Assembly: GCA_002104945.1 (NCBI GenBank)
Contig: MCFH01000056.1
Coordinates: 248,001-312,000 of the forward strand
Origin: Piromyces finnis finn
Taxonomy: Eukaryota > Fungi > Neocallimastigomycota
Length of the DNA: 64,000 nt
Direction of reading: 5' to 3'
Shown: positions 1 through 44,139 of the stretch, piece by piece
Position numbering within the stretch: position 1 is the stretch's first letter
Layout of the letters: every line of letters starts with the position of its first letter
The notes under the pieces: generated by a model
What the model saw: the letters and a program-made list of their open reading frames with translations, nothing else
Database searches by the model: none
What the model was told of the DNA's origin: nothing
Translations under genes and position numbers: made by a program

Positions 1-1412
1 ATTATTGTCTTTTAGAAAAAAAAACTTTTTATTTATAAATTAAGTTTTATATAGTTTATATAATAATTCCAATAATTTTATTTTATTGAAAATGCTTCCA
101 GTTACAAAAATACATAAATATAAGCTTATTAATGTAAAAAGTAGTTTAGCTCAAAATAATTGAAAGATATTAAAATTAATTACTTTATACATGCCAACTA
201 CACTTTTACTATATTGAATTTCAATTAAATAATAAAAAAAAAATTAGGAAAAGTGTTTTATTTAAATAATGATAAAAAGAAAAGAAAAAAAATTAAATAA
301 TGAAATGTTAAAAAAAATATAAAAATATTTATTATTATTTATTATTCATAGACACATAAATAAACCTAGAAATGGTTAAAATTTTTAAATAAAAATAAAG
401 TTTCAAGATTAAAGTAAACAAAGCAGGGTTAGATGTTGTTCATGTCAACATATATAATTTATGATATAGAGAACTATTATTATTTACATGATTTTATACT
501 AATGTAATTGTAATTAACATTTAATACATATTCATATAGTCTTGACATTTTGAATCCTTATTATTATTATATTTAATAAAGTTATTTTATATATATTGTA
601 TTATGTTCATATTTAAAAAAAAAGGTGCAATATTCAATATATTGTTTAAACAATAAATTAAAATATTAATAAAAAATATATATATGGATATTTTATTTTA
701 TTTTATAATTATAAATGTTTATAAGGTTAAAAAGCAATTAAAGAAAATTTTTTTATTCATAAATTAATTTTTTAAATAAAAATAAAATTAAAAAAAAATT
801 TTTTTAAAAAAATTTTATAAATAAGAAAATAAGACTTTTCAGGAAAATTAAAATTTGAAATGAATAAAGAATTAATTAAACTTTAATAACCAAAATTTAA
901 CTATAATTTAAAGAAAATAAAAAAATAAAAAAAAACAGTATTTATTTATTATTTTCATTTTTAATATTGATATTTAGAAATGAAATAAAATTATGAAATT
1001 TAAAAACAATATTTTATTTACACTATTATTACTACTTATTTTTAAATTAAAATGGGTTGTTAGTTCCTCTGAAATTAACAAAAATAATGCTGCAAAAGAG
1101 GTAATTATTATTATTATTTGTTTGAAATTATAAAATATATATATTGTAGTTATTAAAATAAATAATTGTATTAATTAAATATTTATATAGGAGGATAAAT
1201 ATAAAGATATTAATTAAAAAATAACCATATTTGAAGAAGGACAGAACAAATGGAATTCAGACTGGCTTGAATATTCATGTTCAGTAGGAGAATATGATAA
1301 AATTGATAATGGAATAATTATAGTTACACTACTTTATATGGCTGAATTTTCATTGCAAAGTAAAACTTTAAATTCACAGTATGGTTATCTTACTTTTGAC
1401 TTTAAACTTGAA

Positions 1413-1514
1413 CCTGCTGATAATAAAACTATAGATTTATTGGCATTTGATTATGATGGAAACCCTGCTGATAATAAAACTATAGATTTATTGGCATTTG
1501 ATTATGATGGAAAC
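1413..1514 (+). repeat. Exact 51-bp in-frame tandem duplication (PADNKTIDLLAFDYDGN x2)
   Basis: 1413-1463 is identical to 1464-1514. Confidence 0.95.
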
Positions 1515-1829
1515 AACGGTTATGATTACGTTAACCAAGGAAGATATAATTATAACGTATGTATATATACTATTTTTTCATTTAATAATAAATTAAAAAC
1601 ATTAATTGAAATATAAAATGTTTTCTTGTACTTATTATGTTTATTGTATAAAAACAAGGGTTCTGATTGGATTAACATCAATCAAGAAATTAAAAATCAC
1701 AGTAAAAATGCTTACATTAAATTAATAAATAGATTTGCTTGGCATAATGGTAATGAGGGAAATGAAATTACATTATATCTTAAAAATATTTATTATTATG
1801 ATATAAATGTTGATATGAATGATGATAAT

Positions 1830-2240
<411 letters not shown>

Positions 2241-2809
2241 ATGACGAAAATGATTATGATTATGATTTTAATAATTTTTATCAAAATTGTAAAAATTCTA
2301 TTTTAATTGACAGAAAAAATATCAAGTGGTTTAGTATTGATAAATATAAAAAATAATGCAACAAGCTATAATAATTTGTACAATAACTTTTATTATTTAA
2401 TAGTTTTATATTCTTTAAAAAAAAAAAAAAGAAAAAAAAATAAAAATTTTTATTATTATTTATTTTGAAACCTTTATGTATTATAATAAATAAATAAATA
2501 GTATAAAAAATTATTATTTATTTTGATGATATTGTAATTATTGTCAAAGATAAAATGCCTTTTTTTTTAAAGTATGTATAAATTCACACATATTATATTT
2601 TTTGAAAAAAAATAAAAAATTTAAAAGTTTTTAAATTATAAAGATCAAAATAAAACAAAAGAAATTAATATTTCAATAAAGTTAGTTATAAAAATAATAA
2701 ATTATTTACATTATTATATTTAAAAGAAAAAATAAATAATTATAAATATCTTTCTTTATTAGGGTTGACTTTGAAAACTAAAAAAAAAGAAAATTTGTTC
2801 TATTTATAT

Positions 2810-4400
2810 TTGAAGTTTTATCAATGATATTTTAAATAAATGTGAAAGGCTTGTTGTTAGTTTAAAAAATAAACGTTGCTGTGGTGGCCTTTTTATTGAT
2901 GACATTGTTCTGATTGCTCTTAACAAGAAGAACCTTCAAAAGATGTTTAATCTAGTACTCGATTGGGCTAAATTAAATGAAATGTCTTTTTTTGGAATAA
3001 ATAAGTATGTATGCAACTATATGCAACTACTGTTGTTAAACCTATTAACTTTAATAGATCCCCTAGTTATGTAGACCCAACATTTTACATCAGTATGTAC
3101 TATATTCCAAAGGCTTCTTGCTATACTTATCTTGGAATCCCTTTCGATGAAGATCTTTCTCTGACTCCTCTTCTATCTAATATGTACAAAAAAGTTCAGA
3201 AATCTTTATTCTCTTTCAAGAGCTTTCTTACCAACAATTATATTCCTACTGGTTTAAAAAATATAGTTATTCATTCCTATATTTTAAGTAAAGTTTCTTA
3301 TTATTTCTCCATTATTTGGTTCCAACAAAAATAGAACTCGCAGTGTCCAATCTCTTATCAATACTGCTGTTCTTTGGAGTGTCAATAGCTTTCACAATAA
3401 AAGTTTTAATAACAAAGATTTTGTTTTTGAACAAAATTCATTTATTGGCCTGTATGCTCTTACAAGAGATATGAAGATTCCTACCCTTTCAGGTATTTGT
3501 GCTGTGCAATAAGTGAAATGCTTTGTTAAATGGAGAAAATCAAACTGTATTATTAAAGATCTCGTCAGATCTATTCCTCCTATGTCTCATTACTCTTGGG
3601 CCAAAGAATCTTGTTCACTACATAAGAAACTTATGAAAATAAATATTAAAAGTACTAAAGATATTAGAGAAAATTATTGGAAAAATAGTAGCCTAAATAA
3701 TGGAAGTAAAGCCATCAGATATACTAACAGCAAATTCCTTAATTCAAATCGCCTAATGTATATCGGTCTCAACAAACCTCACTTAAATTTAGGAATTACC
3801 TGGATTATTCGTATTCGATGCGGTTATGAAAACACTATCAGAATTGCTAATACCAGTAATAGAGTTACACCTGACTATCCTTGTGTCTGTCCATGTTGTA
3901 GATAGGATGAACAATCTTTTTATCATTGAACTTTAGAATGTCCTGCAATTCTCTGAATACAAAACTTTTTCACTTAGCTTTCTTGACGATCTTTTTACCC
4001 TTTTTTACAATAAATATAAGAACCAATTCATCCATACTTACTCCCTGAAATGGAAGTAAGAAAACAATTTATAACTATATCTTTATGTTCCTTCTTGGTG
4101 GAACTTTAGCTTATGATGAGTTACAAATCGATAAGGCGAAAGAAAGACATTTAAATGAACAGCTTTACAGTTCATCGGGGTCTCATGTTCCATATGCAGA
4201 GGGTCTTGCGGCTTTTCTTACTAAAACAATCCTTATCATTAGTAGCTAAATGAAGCTATTTTTTAATAGGTTTAGTAAGACCCTAACGTAATCAAGAGCG
4301 CCGACGTCGTACCGATATGGCAAAGGAACATTCCTAATGTTCCGTACACAAGGTTCAATGTTAATATTTCTTCGAATGAAAACATTATAAGCTCATGGGA
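2810..4400 (+). mobile_element. 5'-truncated degenerate LINE (RT C-terminal half, Cys/His knuckle, 3' end)
   Basis: CCGGLFIDDIVL RT motif near 2875, YTYLGIP, IRIRCGY...CPCCR..H...C; many stops and frameshifts; same family as 31860-32470. Confidence 0.85.
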
Positions 4401-4859
4401 GTTTAGTGGACACCACACTATCATATCTAATGTTACTTCTTTTTTTTTTTATTTCATTTAATTTATTAGGTAGAGACCAATCCTACACAGTACGAATTAC
4501 AGAGTTCATTGAACTTTTATGCAACTTTAATAATCATTTTATTTTATTTTATATTTATATTTATATATATATATATTTTATTATTTTTATTTATTATTTA
4601 TTATATCAATATCAATATGTATTATCACCTAATATTATGTAATATCACTAATTAAATAAGTAAATAAATAAAAGATGTGTATTCTCTTCCTAGTCTAAAA
4701 AAAAATTTAAAGTTTTAAGTGTTTTTTATAATTAAATTTAATTACTTAAAAATCAATTTTACTATATAATTAATAACATTTTGACCTGGCTGTATTACTA
4801 AACCCTAAAACTTTACAAAAATACATTTTTTTGTATTATGTATAGATGTATAGGTTTAA

Positions 4860-5400
4860 AAAATATAATATATATTCAATTATATTTTCGTTTACTACTA
4901 TTGAGGCGTAGTATAAAGATGTTTTATTATTATTATCTTTTATTTTAACATCCAACACTCTATCTTCAACAAGATATTTAACAAGATTAACATTTTCATT
5001 TTGTGCTTGAAATGCAAAAGATAATGGTGTTTTCTAGTAATTTTTAACATTTATTTGTGCTTTTTTTTTTCTTATTGAATATTTAACTATTTCCTCTTTT
5101 CCTTTTTTTTTAAATGCATAATGTAATGGTGTTTTTCCATTTTTATTTTGAGTATTTACTTTTGCTCCTCTTTAATTAAATACTTAATTATACCTTTATT
5201 TTCTTGTGTGCATTCATAATGTAATAGTGTCCATATGCTTTCATTTTAAATATTTGTGTCTGATCTTTTTTAAATTGAATATTTAACAATATTAATATTA
5301 TTTTTTTTTCTTGGTATGTAAATTTTAATGGAGTATCTCTCTTTTTTTTATTATTAAATTTTATATTAACATTTGATTTTTGTTCCATTAAATATTCTAA
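4860..5400 (-). pseudogene. Degenerate ankyrin-repeat sequence
   Basis: Minus strand reads GAKVNTQNKNGKTPLHYA, VKYLVEDRVLDVKIKDNNNKTSLYYA; frameshifted. Confidence 0.7.
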
Positions 5401-5759
5401 ATTATTATTTTCTTAGTTAAATGAACAATATAATAAATCTTGTCTATCATTATTATGAATATTAAATTTTTTTTTCAATCAAATATTTAATATTACTAGC
5501 ATTTTCTTTTTGTGTTTGACTCATTTTTCAGAGTATCATCCGAAAGTCAATGAGAGTCATTGAGACTCTTAATTAGTAGAAGTTATTAGTTTAGATTTTA
5601 TAATTATTTCAACTTTATTAATATGATTTATGATAAAGAGCTACTATAATGTATACACATCTAATATCTAATTTATATACTTTGATATATTATCACAAAG
5701 TAATATAATACAAATTAGCATTACAATAAAATATAACAAATCTACATTTAATAATTCAT

Positions 5760-6100
5760 GAATGAATACATTACGCTTATAAAAATATAAGTGGAAATAT
5801 GTGAAATATTTAATTGATAAAGATGCAGTTGTAAATACTAAAAATATAGATGGATTTACTCCTTTACATTTTGTGTGACGGGCAGTAAAAGAAAATGACA
5901 ATAGAGTTAAATGTTTAATTGATAATGGAAAAAAGAAACGGATATTAATAACTAAGATGATAATAATTGGACTCCATTACATTATACTTGTAAAAAAGGA
6001 TGTGAAAATTTTGAAAAAGAATTTGATAATAGTTAATATAGGTATAAACAATGATCGTGAAATACCAACACATATTTCATTTCAAAAAAAAGCAATGAAA
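5760..6100 (+). pseudogene. Degenerate ankyrin-repeat sequence
   Basis: VKYLIDKDAVVNTKNIDGFTPLHF*, DDNNWTPLHYTCKKG; stops and frameshifts. Confidence 0.75.
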
Positions 6101-6482
6101 ATATGAAAACTAGTTTAACTATAATACATTGTTATAATTACTTTAATATATATTTATGAAAATACGTGCCTATCCGATTGATATATTTTTTATGTTATGA
6201 TATAAAATATAAATTATAAACCTTAATTATTATAAATTGGTAAATTTATAATATAAATCTTGAGTTTATATTTGTGGCGTATATTTAAATGATGATTATC
6301 ACGATAAATTCTTGTACATAAATAAATGTTATTCCTTATTTTATTAAATAACAAAATGTTATGTTAATAAAATGACTTGATAAAAAAAATAATTATATGA
6401 CACAAATAAAAATTTAATTATTAATTTACAACTTTTATTGTTATTTTTTGTTATATTATAAAATATTATAATATAATCTACT

Positions 6483-7641
6483 TTACAATAAATTTAACAA
6501 ATCATTAATATTTTGTGCCATTAATTTATTTCCTAGGGATGTTATATGAGTATCTCTCCAAAAGTAATTATTCATATATTTCTTTTTATTCCAATTCCAA
6601 CGTGTTTTACAATTCTTAAATCCATAATTTCTGCAATTTTTATATACATCGTCACAAAATTCTTCCGTATTATAAATAAAAATGTTTGTATCTGGATGAT
6701 TTTCAAAAAACTCTATTCCTTTTATTTCTAATAAATTATTAAAATATTCCATTAAGTATTTATTATCAAATCTACATGCTTTACAATAAGGATAAATTTT
6801 AAAAATTAAAAAATTTCTTGCACCAGCATTATATAGATCTTCAATAACTTTAAAATAACTTTCGGAAAATGATTCTATATCCAATGTTTTATTGTGATTT
6901 TCAAAAAGAAATTCTGGTTTTACATCATTAAAACCTAAATTTGTTGCAAACAGTGAATCTTGATAATTCCATCTATTAGAAAATGGTCCTCCTTGACACA
7001 TATTATTAAAGAAAAGATTATATTGTTTTTTAAAATCCAATTTTTCATAATATGAGACATTAGAACTTCTTACACTATTTTATTACATTAATTAAAATTA
7101 TTAAAATATATATTTTAATAATTTTACGAAAAATTTGTAAAACATATATTTAATATAATAATTCCTATTACAGATTTTCATTAATAACTGAACCTCCTTT
7201 TCCATAATTCCATAATGTCATATTATGAATATCAATAAAATGTAAAGGCCAATTTTTACCACCTGAACAATTCTAATTAAATATTTTTTATTTTTTGTTA
7301 AATAAATAAATTTCATAATAATACAATAATTAATATTTAATATAATATTACTTTTCCTGTATAAGTCATATCTGTATAATTTGTAGTTACTTGTGAATGT
7401 GAATCACTATTTTTTTTATGAGATAAATATAAAAAAAAAAAGATAAATAAATGAATAAATATATATAAATAAATATTAAAATTCTATTACCCAAATACAA
7501 TTAAATTAGATATTTTGGAATAATCAAAAATTGTTGTATTCGATAATAATACATATAACTCCCCCCCGAATTCATTTTTATCTTTTTAGCAAAAGATGAT
7601 ATTACTAATACAAAATCGAGTAAAAAATATTTAATTCTCAT
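6483..7641 (-). CDS. Secreted SGNH/GDSL hydrolase (CE16-like acetylesterase or lipase), multi-exon, one apparent frameshift in a G-run
   Basis: Signal-like MRIKYFLLDFVLVISSFA. Block I NLIVFG|DSHS is split by an intron; block II WNYGKGGSV; block III LGFNDV; LYNAGARNFLI; block V WRDTH. Exon 1 needs one more G at the G7 run (7561-7567). Confidence 0.8.
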
Positions 7642-10519: not shown

Positions 10520-12244
10520 AAAATTAAAATTACGGTGATTTTAGAAACCTCATATATAAATCGCCACTTTCAACGTAGTGAGTGATCGCCGACTAATTAG
10601 CTGACATTCTAATTAACCGAGCCGACTTCGATATAGTTTAGAAGGATTTTATTCTCTTCAACTATTGATACTGTAAATGTCGTTATCTTACCATATTAAC
10701 TTGTTATAATTTTACTGGTATATCTACTTATTTTAATTTGAAGTAAAGAAATAAATATTTGAGGAATATTTTATTCATTTGTTTGATTTTTTAATGATCA
10801 TTACATCATTAAAATTTATTATCATGAAAATATTATTTTACAATATTTTAAAGGATAGACAATTGAGAAAAATGAATGAATGAAAACATTAGAATGTGCA
10901 AGAAGCATTTTAATAATAATTATTCTCCAGTCTATTCATACAAATGAGACTTATTTAATCATTAGTTATTCAATGATATGGCTGAAACTCTATGGATTAT
11001 ACATCTACATTATTATTTTACATTACATATTGTTATATTTGTCAAATATTTACATTACATTATTTTACATTGTAGAATTAATTAATATTAAAATTCAAAT
11101 TATATACATATTATTTTTATATCATATCTTATTATGTAACTGTAATATTTACATTGAAACCTTTTCTCTTTGTTAACTTATTAATAAAATTAACTTTATT
11201 TCACATTGATAATGTTTATTTAATTGAAATAATATAAATGTATAAATGTTTATTTTATTTATTTATCTATTTCATAAGTGTATGGCTTATTAATGGACTG
11301 TGAATATTAAACTATTGTTAATGCTTATAGTTTTTAATTATAATAATATAATAATGGTATAATATATTGGAAATAAATAAAAAGTAATAATAATGAAATA
11401 GAAGTATTTTTTTTTGAAATAATTTATAATAAATTTAAAAAATGTAATAAAAGATATATAACCAATTTACACATTTTAGGTATAAATGTATATTATATTT
11501 CATTTAGAGATAAATTAATTGTAATTGTAGAATATTATTAAGTTTTAGAAAGGCAAAACAACACCTATTGTTTAATAATAATAAAAGAAAGAGTTTATTA
11601 TATTTGTTTTTTATGCTTTAAGTAAAAAAGTACATTTATAAATATTTTAATCAAAAAAAGTAAAAAGAAAAACTTTAAAAAATCATAAAATTACAATTAT
11701 GAATTAAAAAACATTTTTTGAATAAATTGTTTTTAATATATATTTATTATTTTTTATTTTATTTTATATATCATTACTATTTATTATAGTTTCTTATTGA
11801 TTATTATTTTAAAAATATATTTTAAAATTCCCATATAAATAAATGAATATTATATAAATAATAAATAAATACAATGGAATATAAAAATTTTACAATAAGT
11901 TTGAATTTAACTTTATCCCAAAAATAATATAGCACAAATTCTTTATTTAATAATGAATATTAATATAATTATTAAAGGTTACACAAAATAATGAAAATAA
12001 CGAAAATAACACAATTAAGATTTATTTTTTTATTTAAAAACTTTACTAATAAAATCAATTTATGTAATGAATTATTTACATCAATGATAAAAAATGTTTC
12101 GTTCTATAACAATTTACAATTTTTGCTTTTTAGTTTGTGGACTAAAGTTTTTTTATCTTTTTTCAAATATATTTGAAATAAAATTAAAAAAAAATTAATA
12201 TTTGTCATTATATAATGATTTTATAAAATGATATTTTTAATTAC

Positions 12245-32899: not shown

Positions 32900-35800
32900 T
32901 ATCAATTATTGAATTATTATTATCTTCAATAAAATTTTAAGAATTATTAGTGGTTTGCTTAATTTAAGGTTAGTAAGTTCTTAATATTGTATTTATTCTT
33001 GTTATTTAATAATAATTATTTCAGTTTAAGATCTTATTTATCTTGTTGTTAACTTTGATTTGTTAAAATAAATTAATATTGACTTATTGAACAAAGGAAG
33101 GATAAAAAAAAAAGGTACAATTTATTTTTAAATTCATAACTAATATATAACTAAGTCATTTTTAATTCACTTTAAAGAAAATAACACGGATATATAACAT
33201 TTTCCTTTTGATAGTTTTATGTACTGTTTAAGTCTTTTTTTTTTTTTTTTTCCTTTAGAGCACGCGTTCGCCATTAATCTCTCGACAACATTTACTTTTA
33301 ATGAAATTTGAATTTACACCTTTTTTTTTAAACTTTACTAGCAAATAGTCAACTTCTTTGAGAGAATAATATAAAGTCGAATATGAATTTAGAAAAAATA
33401 AAATAGAAATTGAACTCAAACTAGAGTAAATTAAAAAAAAAAAAAAGACTTATATTTACTATTGAGAATATACAAAGAAAAATTACTATTTTAATAATGT
33501 AAATAAACAAATATGAAAATTTCTTTTAAATAAAATAATTGATGAATTGAATAATTGATGAATTGAATAATAATTGATGAATTATTATATTACATAGATT
33601 TATTAATATATTAATACATTAATACATTACATAAATTATAATACAGAATAAATAATATAGCCAAGAAAAAATTTAATACTTGATGTAAATTAAAATTAAA
33701 CCAATAATAGAAGATACGTAAGATACATCTAAGCATTTTAAGTATTGATCAAATAGTATCATTTAAATTTATCTGATACATTATTACATTATTAATTAAT
33801 TATTAATTATGTATACAGAAATTTTAAAAATAATTGTACAATTGTAAAACTATTATTCCACATTTTGCCACTAAATTTATTTATTGAAAATTCATAGAGA
33901 ATTCTTCTTTAATATAATTTAAATATATTAAAATCTCTGGTATTACAAATTATTGTTTTTTTTGTATTTTTACCTCGGTGTTATGAACTAACATTTATTT
34001 ATATTTATTATTCAACTTATATATATTTTGGTTATATTATATAATTTCTATTATTTAAAATAAATAAAATTAGTATATATTTATTATTTTAAAAAAAAAA
34101 ATATTTATTTAATATTTATTTTGAAATACAAAAAAAGACAATATTACTTTTTACTTTTTTTCCTAAAATACTTAATAAAAATATATAAAACCAATTCTCT
34201 ATAATTGTCTTTTTTCTTTAACTATATTAAATAGGTCAAAAATATCTTCCAATAATAATAATAAATATAATTAAATAAATAAATAAAATAATATATGTGT
34301 GTATATATTAATTTATATTATCTAATATAATAGAAAATATTTAAAATGATCTTTTATAGTATGGCCTATGGCTTATTATGAATTTAATTAATATAGAGTT
34401 AATATTTGAATAATAATATTATAACCAATATGACTATATAATTAAATATCAAATATTTATAATAATAGTTTCATTATGGAAAATAACAGTACAAATTTCA
34501 AAATATTATATATTTTTTGTTAATTATAAAAATAAATAAATTAATAACTTCTTTAAAATAAAAATCAACAACACATTAACATAAACTAACATAAGCATTC
34601 CTATAAAATATATAAGATATATAAAATTTTAATCCATTATTATTTTATTTAGTAAAGAGAAATAGAATTTTAAAAGAATAAAAGTTTCTATGTTTATTTT
34701 GGTTATTTATTTGATTATTAAAATATTTTTAAAATTACTTTCTTTTTAATTTTTAAAATTAGTTCAATTATATATATTATATATAATGTAAAGTAATTAT
34801 AGTTAAATGATCCATTTATTCATTTATACATACATTTCATAATATATTAAATTTTATATTAAATTTTTTTTCTTTTCTTTTTGTTTAAAATTTGAAAAGC
34901 CATTAATTTATTAATTATGAAAAACATTTATAATTATGAATTTTACAGGAATGTTTTTATACAGTTACCTTTACAATTTATTATGATTACTTTTCATAAA
35001 TTAAATATTAAAAAGATTCATTATAATTATAATAATTATTACTTGAAATATATTAAATAATAAAAATAAAATTTATATATAATTAACTTTTTTGACATTT
35101 TATTATATCACATTAATTAATTCGAGAACTAGACCGCCAGTATTAAAAGATTAAATCTTAATTAATTATAAAAATATTATTATTGTTATTATTTTAATTT
35201 TAACATGGAAGTTGAATTTCTACATAATCTTAACTTTATTATAACCAATACTTTTTAAAAAACAAAATTTTTGGTAAAGAGTAAAACTATATTTTAATAT
35301 ATTAATATATATATTTTTGAAGTTGTTTTATTAAGTTTAAAAATTTTAATTCTATTTATTTTTATTATTTTTATAATTTATAATGTATACAATAAAGCGT
35401 ACTGGCATAGAATATATTATAATTAATCCTTTTAATATATGATTTTAATATATAATTTTTAATAATAAAGGATACATAATAATATAATTATTTATTTAGT
35501 AATTTATTTACTATACTCGAACTATTTATAAAATTATAAGAGAAATATACTAAAATTCATTCATATTATAACAGTTAATCTTTTAGTTCATCATAAGTTA
35601 AATGACCATATTATTTATAAATATTATTAAAATATTTTCTATTTTCATTATTAATAATATTTTTAAATAATAATAAAAACAATAAAATATTACAATTAAA
35701 AATATGTTATTTTTTTATTTTAAAGTATATATTATATAGATTGAATTATATTTCTTTTCTCTTCGAAATATGATATGATAATGTATGGAATGTCTCAGGT

Positions 35801-37825
35801 TCTTACTATTTTTCTATTAAGAAATAAATACAAAAAAGGAAAATTTATCATATGTATATGTATTCTGGGTATGGTTTAAAAAATTTTTTTTGACATTTTT
35901 TCTAATTGCAAAATATTAATTAATAATATATATATATAATAATAATAATAATAACTTATCTAATATAGTATAATATTAATGAAAAATATAATATTACACT
36001 TTATGTTACAAAAACAATTAAAAATTATAATATAAAGTAATAAAATACATATATGTATAATTATATATAACAGTATAATAAAATGATTAAAAGTATAATA
36101 AAAAGTAATAAATATATTAATTAAAAAAAAAGTCAAATTTGAAAAAAGAATATAAAAGAATTGGATTTTGACTGTTTTTAAAACATTTATTCTTAATTTG
36201 TATTATTTATATAATTAAAAACACTCTTTATATTAAAATATATTAAATATATCAAAACACTTTAAAAAGTTTCTCATTATACTTATATTCAATATAAAAG
36301 AAAGAAACAATGAATTCAAAAGAAAGTCTTTTCAATCCCTCGAATAATTTTTTAGAATCACCTAATGGCACTCCGATTTTTAAAAGAAATTCTACATTAT
36401 CAAATGAACTTCTTAGTGATATTATAACAAATAATTATACTGAGGTATCAAGTGTTCCTTTAAGGCTTCCGGAAACCAGAGAGAGTAAAAATGACTTAAT
36501 TCAAAATATAAGTCAAAATTCAAAGCAGAGTAATAATTCAGTAAATATTAATAAATTTGTAAAAAAAAAATATAAATATATATATTATTTATTATTTTAT
36601 TTATTATATAACATATTTTATATTATAATTAATTAAAAAAATATAAAAATATTATTTTTTATTTTAAATTCAATAATTATATTTATATATATGCTATTAT
36701 AGGTATTTTCTGTTTTATCACAGCAAGACTCTCTTACAATTGAAAATACAAGTCCAATATTAAATAATATATCTCCACCATTGATGCCATTTAACGCTTC
36801 TTTTCTTAATTTACCATGTTCATCATTTAAATTGTTATCATTTAATAACAATGCCACTTCTAGTAATCACAACTCATTTATCAACGGGTCTTATTACAAT
36901 TTTTTCAAAAATCCAAATCCAAATCCAAATCCAAATATAAATTCAAATATAAATTCAAATATAAATCCAAATATAAATCCAAATATAAATCCAAATATAT
37001 ATAATTACAACAGATCAGTTAAAAAATTTTATTCAAATATAATTTCAAAAGAAAATAAACAAATAAAAAGACGTGGGAACTCAAAGGGTCATAAGCGCCC
37101 TAATTTTCCCCATAAAGTGACTAATATATTGAAAGAATGGCTTTCAAACCATTCTTTCCCTTATCCTACCATTAATGAGAAGTGTCGTCTTTGTGAGGCT
37201 ACTGGTCTAACAATGGTAGGTTATTAATTATTATTAATATTATAATTATTTTATAAAATTATTATATATATATTAACAATATTTTCTTTTTTCCTTTTTA
37301 TTCATACTACATAATACAACCTATAAATGAATGTATATTTATATAATTAAATATTGAAAATCCTTTTTATCGCCAGAATCAGGTATATATTTAAAATGAT
37401 TTTAAATTATAAATTATTATAAATTATTATAATGATATTTATTACACTTCTAATTATAAATTTTATTTTAATATTATAGATTAATAACTGGTTCATAAAT
37501 GCCAGACGCAATTATTCATAATTTAATATACTTTTATTTAAATATAGAAATAGAAAATTAAAATATTATTATTATTATACATTATTATATTAATATTAAA
37601 TTTTTCAATTACTTATTTATATATATATTAGAATGTTAATATCATATCCTTAAAAAATTAAATAATAACAATAAAATAGTGAAAATAGTAAATATTTATA
37701 TATATATATTCTTTGCAATGTAATTTTCAATCAAAAATAAATATTAATAATAAAATTATTATAGTTTACAAAATAATTATAAATACTTTTGTTATTCATA
37801 TTTGTGTGTCGTTATTGTTTCTAAA
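32900..37825 (+). repeat. Right arm of the large inverted repeat
   Basis: Reverse complement of 21705-25875 plus an extra segment. Confidence 0.95.
36310..37521 (+). CDS. TALE-like homeodomain protein HD-B', 263 aa, four exons
   Basis: Exons 36310-36540, 36703-37215, 37377-37382 (AATCAG = NQ), 37480-37521. HD reads HKRPNFPHKVTNILKEWLSNHSFPYPTINEKCRLCEATGLTM-NQ-INNWFINARRNYS. Confidence 0.9.
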
Positions 37826-37869
37826 AATATTATTGATTTTATTTTATTAATATGAAAAATTATAAAAAC

Positions 37870-37900
<31 letters not shown>

Positions 37901-37999
37901 TATAAATATTACAAAATTAACTAGTTATAAATTCATAAAGTACATTTAAAAATAAATAAAATAGGTTTTTATATTCTCAAAGTACAAAATATAAATATA

Positions 38000-38191
38000 T
38001 TTTTTTTTTAACTTCCGAGTGCATTTCTCCCATCAATCGCATCAATCAAGAGTTAGCACCAATGGTGGTTCTTAGAGAAACGTCGGCTCATTCCTATTGC
38101 TAGGTGGTTGTGACCCTCCTGGTCTGTCATACTGTTTCTTCAGCTTCGACGCTCACTTAATCCATATACATTAGATGCATGTCGTTGTACG
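38000..38191 (-). mobile_element. 5'-truncated copy of the tRNA-derived SINE
   Basis: Matches the 3' 190 bp of 43181-43723 including the poly(A) tail. Confidence 0.85.
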
Positions 38192-39744
38192 ACTCTTCTT
38201 TTTAGCAACTTTTTTCTTTTTCGTATCTTTTACCACTAATTAATTTTAAAATATAATATAAAATGTGGATTATTTTTATTTTATATTATTAAACTTTTTA
38301 AAAAATAACAAAGAAAACTTTTTAATTAAAAAATTGACCAATAAACATTCAAAATCAATAATTAAAAGATCTTTAAAAAAAGTTTACCTTTTACTAAAAC
38401 ACTACTAAATAAATTGATGAATTGTTATCTTTTAATTATATAATGTTATTATTATTAAAGCTTTATAATATTTTAATATTGGTAAATTGTATTTTAATAA
38501 GAATATTTAATATATTTTATTAACTAATTAATTAAATTAACTAATACTTAAAGTATTAGTATTAATATATTATATTGCTATTAAAAGTTTACTTTAAACT
38601 TATGTTGAGTATTTTTAATATGCCATATTATGCCATATAAATAAAAATAATATACGATTATTAAATATTTTATAGGATATACCACCAATACTTTTTAAAT
38701 TATAATATCTTAACTATATTAAATATTAATATCAAAGTATATTAAAATAATTTATAAATACTAATGGAATTTTAAAGTAAAATATAATATATGAAATCTG
38801 GTTTAACTGTAATAATACATTGTTTCAATTATTAAGTCATGTTATTCATAGTTTAAATACTAATATATGATTTGAAATATATCATTTTCCTTTATTTAAT
38901 TATAATAATAATTAATAACTTTAATAAATAATTTAATTTTTAAAAGATACATTATTTTATGGTTTTCTAATAAATAAAACATAAACAATATTTATTCAGC
39001 ATTACAATAATAATAAAATATATTAATAATAACTATTATTTTTGTAATAAGAATATAGAATAGTCACATTTATATTTTTAATATTGATAAAAAGTTTAAT
39101 ACTACTATTAAATAATCTATAAGAATTACAAAATTATTTCGTTTTTTAATTCTAATACCTTATAACTTTATTCCCATATAATATTTATCTTTTCCTTCTC
39201 TAATTCATTTTTAATACACGCTTTTAAAAAGATTTAATTTAATTAATTATTAAATTTAAAAAAAAGGAAAAAATAAATTAATTATTAATTTTTTTTTAAT
39301 AATAATAAAATATTAATAAAAAAATAAATAAATAATAAAACAAATTAAATTTATATTATTAGCTCTATTATATATATTCTTTTTAGATTAAATAGGAACT
39401 TTTAATAATATGTTTTAACTCCTTTCTTTTAAAATTTAATAACAATTATTGTAGTTAATAATTAAGAATAATAACTTTAATAAAATGTAATTTTATAAAA
39501 GATAGCAATTATAATAATGGTTTATAAAGGTATATATAAGAAGCATTTGTTTTCTTGATTATTTATTATTTTAAAATTGAATTTCATTATTCAATCCTTA
39601 TTTCAATATAGCAATCAAGAATTCAAAAAGTAGAGTTTAATAACATTTATTAAAATATTAATAAAAATATTTCTATAATATATTTAAAATTAAATTATTT
39701 TAAAAAAAGAAATATAATTTTCTATCTACATTTTACGAATCAAA

Positions 39745-39897
39745 ATGCCAAGCTCAATGTTAAATTTAGCTTTATTAAAATCTACTAGAACTGGTTCTGG
39801 AGCTATTACATATTCAAAACCAAGAAATAATATAACTAAAAATAAAGTTAAAAGTAACATTAATCCATATGTTACTTGTAGCTGTGTTGTTCAATAA
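39745..39897 (+). CDS. 50-aa CaaX peptide, candidate lipopeptide pheromone precursor
   Basis: caaaATG...TGT GTT GTT CAA TAA TGA; MPSSMLNLALLKSTRTGSGAITYSKPRNNITKNKVKSNINPYVTCSCVVQ*; visibly more GC-rich than its flanks. Confidence 0.6.
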   Translation: MPSSMLNLALLKSTRTGSGAITYSKPRNNITKNKVKSNINPYVTCSCVVQ

Positions 39898-40623
39898 TGA
39901 ACAAAAAATCAAACTAAAAAAAAAATAGTACTATCATTTATTCATAATTTTAATTTTACAAATATATAAATAAAAAAATAAAATATTTTTTCACTTTTTG
40001 TTAATTACTATAATTTCATAATTTTAAATATATTTTAAAATATTCACATGTATTCATATGTATACATGTATGTAAATTCTTTTATAATAAATTTAAATAG
40101 TAATAAAGAATTACATTTTAATTATAAAAAAAAAATAAAAAATAAAAAAATAAAATAAAATAAAAAAGAAAAGATTTATTTAATAATTAAAATAAATTTT
40201 GTGTTTTTTTATAATAAACATATAAATATTTCAATTTTACTTATTAAAAGTTATTTATTAGACAAACAAGCAAAATATTTAAAATTATTACTATTTCTTT
40301 TAATGTGTAAAGTTTAATAAAGTTATTAAATTATTAATTTGATAAAAAGTTAGACTTAAAAAATTATTAGTTAAACTAAGAAATTTAAAGTAATCATTAA
40401 AATTACTTTCAAGGTTGTTTTTTAATTTATATTTATATTTATTTTAATTATATTTTATTGCAAAAATAATATTTATTTATGAATAAGTATTACAAACTAT
40501 AATACAAACACAAAATAAATATTCAATTTTTAACTTTTTTTATAATCTTAAATTCAATGTTTTATAATTTTAAATTTAATTATATTTTAAATTTTTTATT
40601 ATAAATTTGATAATATTGAATAA

Positions 40624-41781
40624 TTAGTTTTTTTTCTTTAAAATATTAAGAACTTCGATAATTTCATGTCTATGTTTTATTTTATCTTCAGGTCTTATCA
40701 TTTCTAAATATTTAGAACATTTATTCATTTTATTTTCTTTTATCATCTTTTTCACCTTATTTATGATGAATTTATAATCATGTTTATTTTTGCCTTTGGT
40801 TTGAATAAACTTGTAACCCTCATATCTGTTGATACCATTAAAAATATTAAAATATGTTAGAATAAATATTATAAATATAATAATTTTAATTTCATTAATA
40901 ATCATATTTAATTAATTATATTATTATAATTAAATATTAAAATATTAAAATACATAAATACATAATTGTATAAATATATACATACACATATTGATGAATT
41001 ATTTTATGAATTTTTTGGCGGTGAATAAAAGCTTTCTTTACCTCATCATTTTGGCATTTCCATAATTCTCCAAAATATCTATTTAAAATTTTATAATTAT
41101 ATGGAATTGCATTATTTTGTTTAAAATAGTAGGTCAAGTATTTTTTAAAAATCATAAAACAATTTAATGGACGAGGTATTTTATTACCGTATTTTCTTTT
41201 TCCATTGAAAATAAATGATGTGTAAACAGTTGATATTTTTTGTAAAATATCTTTATCTTTCATTAAAAATTCAACATCACAATCGTTCAATTCTTCCATA
41301 AAATACAAAAGATATTCTTTATTCATTACTTTTGCTAATTTTAATATTTCAATTCTATTTGAAGCTTGTTGAATTAATTTTCTTACTTCATTTGAAAAAT
41401 CATCATTGACATTAGATGGGATATAATAATAATTATAATAATCAATTTTATTAAAAGCGTTTTTATAAACATCAATATTGATATTATTATTGCTATTACT
41501 ATTGATATTTTCATTAATATTAATAATATTATTAATATTTTGATCATAATTTGTAAAATTATTATTGATTACTTGATAATTAATATTTTGATTATAATTC
41601 AATTGATTGCAATTGACTATATTGATGATTTGGCCATTATTAATTTGATTAATATAGATTTGATTGTTATTAATATTATTATTATAATTAACAATAGTTA
41701 AATAGGAATTGCAATCATCATAATTATAATTATTGCTATTTTTTAATGTAAATTCATTCTTGAATAAATTTTCATAATCGA

Positions 41782-41826
<45 letters not shown>

Positions 41827-42157
41827 GATTGATATTATTAATATCAATAACTGGAATGTAATTCACTTGATTATTATTATTATTTTGATAATTATTATGA
41901 ACATTGATTGTTTTCATGTTATTACCAAAATTATCAAAGATGTAGTTAGTATTAAAAGGAGGAGAGACGATATTTGGTTGGGAAGTAACCTGAATATTCT
42001 GAATATTGGTTTTAGTAAAGTTCGTCAAGGTAGGATCTAACACATCAGAGAAATTACCACTTTGAAGATTTAAAATGGAATTATTAGAATTCTTTGTACT
42101 TAACATATCAAATTGTTGATAATTAATATTATTAATGTTATTAATATCATAAAACAT
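40624..42157 (-). CDS. MATA/Sox-type HMG-box transcription factor, about 457 aa, two exons
   Basis: Exon 42157-40986 and exon 40825-40624 (phase 2, GTATGT..ACAG). HMG box KIPRPLNCFMIFKK...LNRYFGELWKCQNDEVKKAF...HKIIHQYVYEGYKF; Asn-rich N-terminus. Confidence 0.9.
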
Positions 42158-43036
42158 TTTTAATAATTTAAAAAAAAAAGGGAAAAAATAATTATTTAAT
42201 TATTAATTTATTTTCTTTTTTATTTTAAAAAAAAAGTAAAGATAAAACAGAAAAAAAATTAAAAAAAAAAAAAAAAACGAATTTATATACTTGAATTTTT
42301 AACTTTTTTTTGTGTCATCTATTTCTTTCAGAATAGTCCAATAATTCAAAAATAAAGGTATACAAATTTCGAAATAAATAAGATTTTAAACTAGTATTAA
42401 CCTTTTTAAACTTTTATTAATCAATTGTAGTTTATTTTGAAAATTGATTAATAGAAAGTTTTCTAGCAATAAACTTTATTTCTGTTTAACTATATTACAC
42501 AGTCGATTTTAACATTTTTAAAGCATTAGAGTTTAAATTTTAAAAACCTTTCTATTTTCAATTTTATAATATTTAATTATAGTTTTAAAGTAAAAAATCA
42601 ATCAAATAATTAAAGTCATTATTATGAGACATAGTACTTAAAATATAAAAAATAAAATTTAATAAGCTATTTTTATTTTTTTTTATCAGTGGGATACCTA
42701 ATTCTCACATAAAAATATTAAAGCATTAATTTAAATATTGAATTAATAAAAAAATTTATATAGATTTATAAACCTTTTTAAATGGATGTTGATTTTATTC
42801 ATTATCATTATATTTATACATAATACCTTTTCTATATATACATTTCATTAATAAATTAATAAATATTGTAAAATAAAATTTAAATAAATGCTTTTCGTTA
42901 TTAGCATGAAAAAAAATTTAACAAATTACTTTTTCATTATTTTCTTTTTTCTTTTATAATTATTATAATTATCAAAGTTTTTTTTGATCAGTAACTATAA
43001 TTAAATAAAATTTATAAAAATTTGTTGGATGACGAA

Positions 43037-43077
<41 letters not shown>

Positions 43078-43180
43078 AAAGTCTGGATAATAGTAAAAAA
43101 AAAAAAAAAAAAAGCGCTTTTAATAATTTAGATTTATAATAATAATGTAATATTCTTGGATACTTATATTTTTTTATTAT

Positions 43181-43723
43181 TTTTTTTTAACTTCCGAGTG
43201 CATTTTTCCCATCGATCAGAGTTAGCTCCAATGGTGGTTCTTAGAGAAACGTTGGCTCATTCCTATTGCTAGGTGGTTGTGACCCTCCTGGTCTGTCATA
43301 CTGTTTCTTCAGCTTCGACGCTCACTTAATCCATGTACATTAGATGCATGTCGTTGTACGATATTTCACAACTACAATGCTAAGCCTCTTATAGTCAAAT
43401 TGATCACGTGTCAACCGCCCCCTAATGTTTACACTTAAATTGATTAAGGAATATTATGTGTTTTTGGCATAGCCTAAGTCACCACTTATTAAGTTCTAAT
43501 TTGGAATGTACCATGTACACTAGACCCTCTCAGGCCGGCTAGACGAGTGTTATTATCATAGTAGTAAATTAGAAAGTTCATTTATACTTACCTGAATATC
43601 ATAACCCAACCCATGGCAAACCCAGTGGGAAAATCCACAGGCACTGACATCTGCGGGGTCGAACCAGAAGCCTTATGTATGCTAAGGAAACGCCTTAACA
43701 ACAGGATAAAAACTGGAACGACT
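43181..43723 (-). mobile_element. tRNA-derived SINE, about 540 bp, full length
   Basis: Minus-strand 5' end GTCGTTCC...GTTAAGGCG...GGTTCGACCCC (A-box-like and B-box), poly(A) tail, 14-bp TSD tatttttttattat (43167-43180 and 43724-43737). Confidence 0.8.
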
Positions 43724-44139
43724 TATTTTTTTATTATGGTAATTTATTAATATTTCATTTCGAAAACTTTATTAATAATTAAAAATTTGTATTTATACAA
43801 AAATTTTTGGCTTATGCTAAATTACATACATTATCAATACATTATTAATACATTATATTAAGTACATTTTACCATATAACATTAATAGGCAAAAAATATT
43901 TTATAAATTTTTTAAAATAAGTTAAATGTATTATCCTTTAGAATTATGTAAAGTAATAATGTAACATTATATATAAAGATAAACTTTTAACTATTTTTAT
44001 TGTACAATATATAATACATTTATTGTATTTAATGTATATTATTAGAAGTTGTTAATTTAGGATTTATAATTATTTCAACCTTTATTAGAGTAATGTATGA
44101 TAAATAAATACATTACTCTAATGTATTTATTAATAAAGA

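Follow-up and report, generated by a model that had tools for sequence, protein, structure and literature searches.

Whether gut fungi might use lipid-modified peptides as mating signals is a question raised by a short reading frame in the genome of Piromyces finnis (Neocallimastigomycota; contig MCFH01000056.1, assembly GCA_002104945.1). To our knowledge, Ascomycota and Basidiomycota are the only groups with known lipid-modified peptide pheromones. Neocallimastigomycota have no known sexual cycle; homologues of STE6, STE20, GPA1 and DMC1 exist in this lineage, and no homologues of peptide mating factors have been found (PMC6883316); a peptide mating factor was also not found in arbuscular mycorrhizal fungi (PMC3834313). 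In the window, that is, the whole stretch of 64,000 nucleotides that was analysed, a first-pass annotation had described a 50-codon ORF with a caaaATG start, a double stop, a Ser/Thr/Lys/Asn-rich pro-region and a CaaX end, lying between a homeodomain gene and the 3' end of an HMG-box gene. It had likened the product to the precursors of a-factor and M-factor. The sequence bears out both the ORF and its position, as defined by the following features.

39745-39897, + strand: candidate CaaX peptide precursor ORF, 50 codons plus TAA, with no gene call or other annotation in the GenBank record of GCA_002104945.1
39883-39894, + strand: CaaX box, C47-V-V-Q50
39895-39900, + strand: tandem stops TAA TGA (TAA at 39895-39897), read directly from the sequence
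36310 to about 37521, + strand: TALE homeodomain gene HD-B', with a Homeobox_KN match (gene called at L002:14637-15374)
40624-42157, - strand: HMG-box gene ORX43065.1, convergent with the peptide gene, with an intron at 40826-40985 (100% match to P0001)

The product of the ORF, MPSSMLNLALLKSTRTGSGAITYSKPRNNITKNKVKSNINPYVTCSCVVQ, starts at an ATG at 39745 in the context atcaaaATGcc. It contains seven Lys and Arg residues and no Asp or Glu (net charge +7, pI 10.2), and its pro-region is rich in Ser, Thr, Lys and Asn. The N-terminus is rich in Ser, Thr, Gly and Pro, and a classical signal peptide, judged by eye, is absent. This N-terminus (MPSSMLNLALLKSTRTG...) resembles an organellar (hydrogenosomal) presequence, a likeness that is hard to square with the CaaX end. 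The C-terminal nonamer is hydrophobic compared with residues 1-38 (GRAVY of +0.64 and -0.61, respectively), and the peptide ends in CSCVVQ, with a second cysteine (C45, 39877-39879) at position -2 from the CaaX Cys47. The Asn residues upstream of the C-terminal end, N28, N29, N33, N38 and N40, are all candidate cut sites. The first-pass annotation had taken a CaaX box with X=Q as a signal for farnesylation, which holds at the level of the motif: CVVQ belongs to the prenylation-positive training set of a yeast reporter screen (PMC9231725, supplementary file 7), a result that concerns the motif and not the P. finnis protein. It had also proposed a mature product.

39859-39885, + strand: proposed mature 9-mer INPYVTCSC (I39-C47), its boundary drawn from the sequence only

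The 9-mer INPYVTCSC-farnesyl is a guess, one among several possible N-termini.

By itself the ORF proves little, because comparable reading frames arise readily by chance. In a control of 300 composition-matched shuffles of the whole window, canonical CaaX ORFs of 30-80 aa occurred 0.25 times per window, and at least one was present in 22% of the shuffles. No second copy of the CaaX ORF exists elsewhere in the 64-kb window. What raises the ORF above chance is the agreement of four independent kinds of evidence, namely composition and codon usage, transcription, self-containment and paralogues. As for composition, the GC content of the ORF is 0.26, compared with 0.11-0.12 in the 500 nt on either side, and its GC3 is 0.10. 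We scored codon usage as log-odds under a model trained on 41 long ORFs of the P. finnis genome. The ORF's own frame obtained 17.7 bits, the top score among the six frames, whereas the other two + frames were negative and the antisense frames reached at most 11.8 bits. Per codon, the ORF scored 0.35 against a median of 0.31 for the long ORFs.

Transcript support, which the first-pass annotation had suggested looking for, was found in two RNA runs, X1 and X3, whose contigs are unstranded. A 315-nt contig of X1 covers 39628-39895 with one mismatch and is colinear with the genome; its final 47 nt do not match the window past 39895, and no splice signal accounts for this mismatch. A 235-nt contig of X3 covers 39706-39933 and bears the variants of one of the paralogous copies (copy B, see below). 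The X1 contig of the HMG gene joins 40825 to 40986 and so drops exactly the GT..AG intron at 40826-40985. Since this intron is precisely removed, X1 represents genuine RNA. The long X1 pieces listed map without exception to genic parts or to one high-copy repeat. These contigs and the comparison between copies delimit the features around the ORF.

39394-39627, + strand: conserved upstream block and putative peptide-gene promoter; identity to paralogue B is 92-98% per 60-nt bin
39628-39744, + strand: 5' UTR of at least 117 nt, colinear in the X1 contig, with an in-frame stop inside and no ATG
39969-39982, + strand: two AATAAA hexamers resembling poly(A) signals (39969 and 39977), 72-80 nt past the stop, kept in all three copies

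The in-frame stop is a TAA at 39715, 30 nt upstream of the ATG. Given this stop, the lack of any ATG between 39628 and 39744 and the colinear X1 contig, no ATG precedes that at 39745 in the known transcript, which excludes a terminal exon. Farther upstream than 39394, identity to paralogue B is only 75-85%. The conserved island thus extends over about 39394-39993. It closes with the AATAAA pair, and right after it the identity between copies drops. Its extent and the poly(A) signals at its end are what a small + strand gene with promoter and 3' end would show. The promoters of the three copies contain no HMG core, Sox motif, Ste12 PRE, S. pombe TR box or TALE site.

We reached the paralogous loci through the paralogues of the neighbouring HMG and HD proteins, which led to contig MCFH01000100.1. 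Two further intact copies of the ORF lie on this contig, both likewise unannotated: copy A at L005:4343-4495 and, 15,797 nt away, copy B at L005:20140-20292 (the same as L001:3001-3153). The window from 35443 to 44122 is colinear with L005:1-7777 and both contain, in the same arrangement, a homeodomain gene (+), the peptide gene (+) and the HMG gene (-). Duplication therefore took in the three genes together, and copy A sits inside this duplicated homeodomain-peptide-HMG cassette. At the locus of copy B only a shorter module is present, with the HMG segment in inverted orientation 7 kb off, behind an inserted gene of 851 aa.

38194-40473, no strand assigned: 2.3-kb duplicated module with the peptide gene, 87% identical to L001:1424-3701 (the same as L005:18563-20840)

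Within this one genome the cassette therefore occurs at least twice and the peptide module three times. The search with the HD protein returned just two P. finnis paralogues. As for the HMG protein, its HMG_box match covers the full profile with a score of 20.5 bits, under the Pfam cut-off of 25.4. Of four other loci of HMG paralogues that were retrieved, two have no peptide module, namely L003 and L004 (the P0003 and P0004 loci). L004 has, in the corresponding position, a 53-aa ORF ending in CFCK (11324-11485, - strand), which we judged to be a chance occurrence, as X=K is disfavoured and the sequence shows no similarity to the peptide; a called gene of 67 aa at the same locus is an ankyrin fragment.

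The comparison of the three copies, feature by feature, divides the ORF into two parts.

39745-39801, + strand: variable N-terminal part, codons 1-19, which holds all 4-5 differences among the three copies
39802-39894, + strand: invariant C-terminal 31 codons (AITYSKPRNNITKNKVKSNINPYVTCSCVVQ), identical in all three copies

The substitutions among the copies are L8S, R15G, T16A and G19R, every one of them non-synonymous. Between the window and copy A, identity is 97.4% over the whole ORF and 100% over codons 20-50 (0 of 96 nt differ), 93% in the 5' UTR of the peptide gene and 87% in the first 100 nt 3' of its stop. The corresponding figures are 88-91% for the HMG exons, 84% for the HMG intron and 73-88% for the intergenic sequence of the cassette. 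The interval between the peptide gene and the HMG stop (73%, with many gaps) is the least conserved part. In the 3.7-kb alignment with copy A, the longest run free of differences spans 39791-39910 (120 nt; the runner-up measures 83 nt) and exceeds any run in the HMG exons. Against copy B, the longest run spans 39800-39910 (111 nt; runner-up, 66 nt). The two runs take in codons 16-50 and 19-50, respectively, and both extend 13 nt beyond the stop of the peptide ORF.

In multi-copy pheromone genes, such as MFA1/2, mfm1-3 and Cryptococcus MF, the mature part stays constant and the pro-regions drift. The P. finnis paralogues likewise keep the C-terminal part while the N-terminal part diverges, as in lipopeptide pheromone families, in a set of three young copies. 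The power of this comparison is limited because the copies are young, the identity of the cassette being about 87%. Moreover, the lack of synonymous changes in the invariant block points to constraint or gene conversion acting on the block rather than to a clean dN/dS signal at the protein level. Recent gene conversion or constraint on the nucleotide sequence could explain the identity of the block equally well as selection on the protein.

Searches in sequence collections added no relatives. A word-indexed search of 5.8 billion clusters returned no candidate for the peptide, not even the peptide itself, and an exhaustive phmmer search against 1.84 billion representative proteins gave no match at E<=0.001. 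The best score in the ESM Atlas was 0.78, with no family assigned, and Pfam had no match at E<=10, G-gamma included. Metagenome scans, with the peptide and with the HMG alignment, and a scan of prokaryotic genomes returned pattern matches only, none of which was confirmed. Rfam found nothing in 37000-41000, and no tRNAs are present. Our literature search found no published HD/HMG/peptide locus in anaerobic gut fungi.

These data bear on several explanations in which the ORF is not an independent peptide gene. The conserved island may be a non-coding RNA or a regulatory element, or the 3' UTR or read-through of the HMG gene, with the CaaX frame open by chance. The frequency of such ORFs in shuffled windows, the unstranded RNA, the failure to find homologues and the continuation of the identical run past the stop all agree with this explanation; so does the pattern of changes, none of them synonymous in the block and all of them non-synonymous elsewhere, which yields no dN/dS signal. 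We nevertheless consider it unlikely. The codon score is clearly best in the + frame, at the median of long ORFs, with the other + frames negative; GC3 is 0.10 inside a GC island; the ATG stands in a good context and is the first of the transcript; none of the three copies has a disrupted ORF; and the poly(A) signals are placed as a + strand gene requires. The island is not simply the HMG 3' UTR either, because nothing in the cassette is less conserved than the interval that separates it from the HMG stop. A different possibility is that the real gene lies on the opposite strand and encodes a small membrane or secreted peptide of 44 aa with a hydrophobic N-terminus (MLLLTLFLVILFLGFEYVIA...).

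39726-39860, - strand: overlapping antisense ORF of 44 aa, open in all three copies, scoring 11.8 bits, with T at -3 of its ATG

This frame also has a low-GC third codon position and a positive codon score, and the unstranded RNA would suit it as well as the + ORF. It is, however, highly improbable as the gene: its score lies about 6 bits below that of the + frame and the T at -3 makes for a poor ATG context, and antisense frames rich in Phe, Ile and Leu are expected opposite Lys/Asn-rich genes in very AT-rich DNA. Furthermore, 50 nt of the identical run lie ahead of its ATG, and its C-terminal half holds all the substitutions.

The first-pass annotation had itself named an outcome that would overturn its proposal, in which the ORF forms the final exon of a longer protein, for instance a G-protein gamma subunit; we considered other prenylated proteins of this kind, such as small GTPases, along with it. 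The NPY..C.CaaX ending does loosely recall the tails of G-gamma proteins. With the in-frame TAA 30 nt ahead of the ATG, an RNA contig that runs unspliced and colinear across 117 nt upstream, no canonical joint to the ORF among the joints listed and no protein sharing the tail in the Pfam and phmmer searches, this outcome can be set aside with near certainty. We rejected a G-gamma subunit (PF00631) also because the GGL coiled-coil domain of about 60-70 residues is absent from a protein of 50 aa in all. The last exon of a member of the Ras superfamily was rejected because no upstream G domain is spliced on, as the stop and the contig indicate. We conclude that 39745-39897 is probably a real, translated CaaX micro-gene, whatever its function.

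What such a gene might do can be approached by comparison with known systems. We know of no well-known fungal proteins of this size and with this CaaX ending other than lipopeptide pheromone precursors. Precursors of the a-factor type measure about 20-100 aa, and loss of their N-terminal extension leaves a lipopeptide of about 9-15 residues. The maturation of a-factor requires Ram1/2, Ste24/Rce1, Ste14 and Axl1, followed by export through Ste6 and recognition by the receptor Ste3. Its precursors in S. cerevisiae, MFA1 and MFA2 (36 and 38 aa), are, like the P. finnis peptide, short and without signal peptide. The a-factor precursor has a three-part layout, is cut between N21 and Y22, and its product is exported by Ste6 (PMC2134810). 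The P. finnis peptide shares this layout of extension, short hydrophobic segment and canonical CaaX box (PMC2134810), and Asn residues stand just ahead of its hydrophobic C-terminal segment, which recalls the N21/Y22 cut. In each case there are several gene copies with a common C-terminal part. However, there is no sequence homology between them, and the P. finnis peptide is longer (50 aa), strongly basic, free of acidic residues and endowed with an extra Cys at -2. In addition, MFA1 and MFA2 are unlinked to MAT whereas the P. finnis peptide gene is linked to HD and HMG genes, and a-factor is sensed by Ste3, a receptor that has not been reported in the P. finnis lineage.

M-factor of S. pombe, the product of mfm1-3, matures to YTPKVPYMC-farnesyl-OMe and is recognised by Map3, a receptor of the Ste3 class. 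The mfm genes are also multi-copy, with differing pro-regions, a constant mature part and a CaaX box in which a1 and a2 are aliphatic, and the predicted P. finnis peptide would equally have nine residues, with Pro, Tyr, Val and Thr among them, and be cut after Asn. The similarity is one of type and not of alignment; the TR-box sites for an HMG protein (Ste11) that precede the mfm genes were not found upstream of the P. finnis copies, and the receptor class of Map3 is unreported in P. finnis. Lipopeptide pheromone genes of basidiomycetes are linked to MAT, as with Ustilago mfa and with Cryptococcus MF, which lies within a MAT locus that also holds the SXI homeodomain genes. Here, too, small CaaX genes are linked to homeodomain regulators and several identical or nearly identical copies are scattered in a repeat-rich region. 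In contrast to the P. finnis window, which holds no receptor gene, basidiomycete pheromone genes adjoin genes for Ste3-type receptors, and their locus is idiomorphic between mating types, whereas the P. finnis cassette is repeated in one genome of a fungus with no known mating types. This multiplicity in a single genome is not that of a classic single idiomorphic MAT locus. A CaaX box closely preceded by another Cys, along with a polybasic stretch, also occurs in the hypervariable tails of Ras/Rap2-type GTPases and of G-gamma proteins, but the P. finnis peptide has neither a G domain nor a G-gamma-like domain and is a self-contained protein of 50 aa.

It is possible, and we propose it tentatively, that the gene encodes a processed and exported lipopeptide signal of the a-factor/M-factor type. 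The locus would then be an independent micro-gene of P. finnis, carried within the homeodomain-peptide-HMG cassette that is duplicated in the genome, with a putative promoter at about 39400-39620, at least 117 nt of 5' UTR, a CDS for a 50-residue precursor of the lipopeptide type (39745-39897), candidate poly(A) signals at 39969-39982 and an mRNA of about 0.4 kb. Farnesylation of Cys47 in CVVQ would be followed by removal of -VVQ by a CaaX protease and by methyl-esterification of the new C-terminus. The basic N-terminal extension would be trimmed away, and a Ste6-like pump of the ABC-B type would export a short hydrophobic lipopeptide, ...NPYVTCSC(farnesyl)-OMe, which may act as a signal from cell to cell. 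All these biochemical steps, as well as the mature end, the secretion and the role in mating, are what we infer for the peptide. No gene for a Ste6-type transporter lies within the 64-kb window. The features that appear to fit the pheromone class are the layout, the hydrophobic nonamer with its preceding Asn, the variable N-terminal and invariant C-terminal parts of the copies and the linkage to HD and HMG genes. Others speak otherwise: the charge of +7 without acidic residues and the Cys at -2 suggest intracellular tails such as those of Ras and Rap, the invariant block of 31 residues is much longer than a mature pheromone (9-13 residues), the pheromone-response-type motifs that we searched for are absent from the promoter, the cassette is multi-copy and no Ste3 receptor is reported.

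The same gene-level evidence would also support an intracellular prenylated micropeptide, carrying farnesyl on C47 and perhaps palmitate on C45, and anchored to the cytoplasmic face of a membrane as a regulator or adaptor that is not secreted. In tails of the Ras family, the usual position for palmitoylation is the Cys two residues before the CaaX Cys, and CSC-VVQ puts the second Cys at exactly this place. The excess of basic residues gives a polybasic stretch like a free-standing hypervariable tail of Ras or Rap2, and both the length of the invariant block, well beyond that of a 9-13-residue pheromone, and the unreported receptor suit such an anchor. On the other hand, an anchor would leave unexplained why the gene is repeatedly linked to HD and HMG regulators, and the peptide has no recognisable functional domain. 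We know of no free-standing family of prenylated anchors of 50 aa in fungi, and regard this function as somewhat unlikely.

The likeness to a-factor and M-factor precursors asserted in the first-pass annotation has thus stood in part. The three-part layout, the CaaX box, the HD and HMG neighbours and the variable-N/invariant-C copies agree with it, while a basic precursor with a second Cys fits a Ras-tail-like anchor equally well. In a survey of P. finnis GPCRs, only class C and rhodopsin/Dicty-CAR receptors were found, and none of the Ste3 class (PMC5168858). No Ste3 turned up in Chytridiomycota (PMC3251606), and the receptor is said to occur mainly in Dikarya (PMC12842992). These published surveys speak against a cognate Ste3-class GPCR in P. 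finnis. For gut fungi in general, it is doubtful that they make farnesylated lipopeptide pheromones encoded in repeated homeodomain-peptide-HMG cassettes resembling mating-type loci.

New at this locus are the RNA support for two members of the peptide family, the self-contained ORF and the feature-by-feature comparison of conservation. Genes of 50 codons escape annotation in the P. finnis genome, and the one described here is an unannotated, transcribed candidate, conserved among paralogues and physically coupled to HD and HMG regulators. If it encodes an intracellular anchor, it would represent an undescribed class of fungal prenylated micropeptides. If it encodes a lipopeptide pheromone, a-factor-type signalling would predate Dikarya or lie outside them, its receptor would be other than Ste3, and a cryptic sexual or parasexual cycle would exist in a lineage regarded as asexual. 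Breeding would be valuable for the engineering of biomass-degrading gut fungi, and with this candidate sex and signalling in these organisms become testable.

The left boundary of the duplicated peptide module, at window position 38194, coincides exactly with a short segment of distinct composition:

Window 38010-38195: GC-richer segment of about 180 nt with high word depth in the reads.

Word depth of this segment is very high in all four runs, reaching thousands in RNA and more than 300,000 in DNA. Immediately before the segment, at about 38003-38012, lies a run of T that on the minus strand would correspond to a poly(A) tail. The segment has no match in Rfam and no tRNA match, and it is probably a fragment of a high-copy SINE-like retroposon. 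Within the module itself, the paralogues are 95-98% identical over the non-coding stretch 38286-38553, which includes a 102-nt run identical between them and contains no evident ORF.

The transcription evidence for the peptide gene includes a contig from RNA run X1 that fits the window perfectly through the first base of the stop codon (T at 39895) and whose following 47 nt do not fit. No splice signal is found at the break (39895/39896). The 47 nt could come from another paralogue with a different 3' end, or the contig could be chimeric.

The convergent HMG gene and two features of loci carrying HMG paralogues are located as follows:

Window 42157-40986 (exon), 40826-40985 (intron) and 40825-40624 (exon), minus strand: spliced model of the HMG gene.
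L001 (MCFH01000100.1) 4815-7370, minus strand: called gene of 851 aa.
L004 11324-11485, minus strand: 53-aa ORF ending SCFCK.

Our spliced model of the HMG gene returns a product of 457 aa, compared to 421 aa in GenBank (ORX43065.1), and the annotated model therefore takes out another piece. The HMG_box profile is matched over its full length at 20.5 bits, under the Pfam gathering cut-off of 25.4 bits.

In L003 (MCFH01000227.1), which is devoid of the peptide module, the HMG unit corresponding to window 40427-42742 forms a perfect head-to-head palindrome (360-5086), with arms joining at approximately 2712-2719. In L001, which hosts copy B of the peptide gene, the 851-aa gene separates this copy from an inverted HMG segment; its product has no Pfam family, and the gene could be the agent or the cargo of the rearrangement. 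At L004, the position and orientation of the 53-aa ORF relative to the HMG 3' end match those of the peptide gene in the window; this locus is without the peptide module, and the ORF is probably due to chance.

In DNA run X4, a contig with copy-B-type variants (window 39725-39877) has a word depth of 819 and contigs with HMG variants reach 1130-1250, compared to about 240-280 for single-copy pieces nearby. Although word depth in reads is not to be equated with copy number, these values hint that the peptide and HMG genes are more numerous in the genome than in the assembly.
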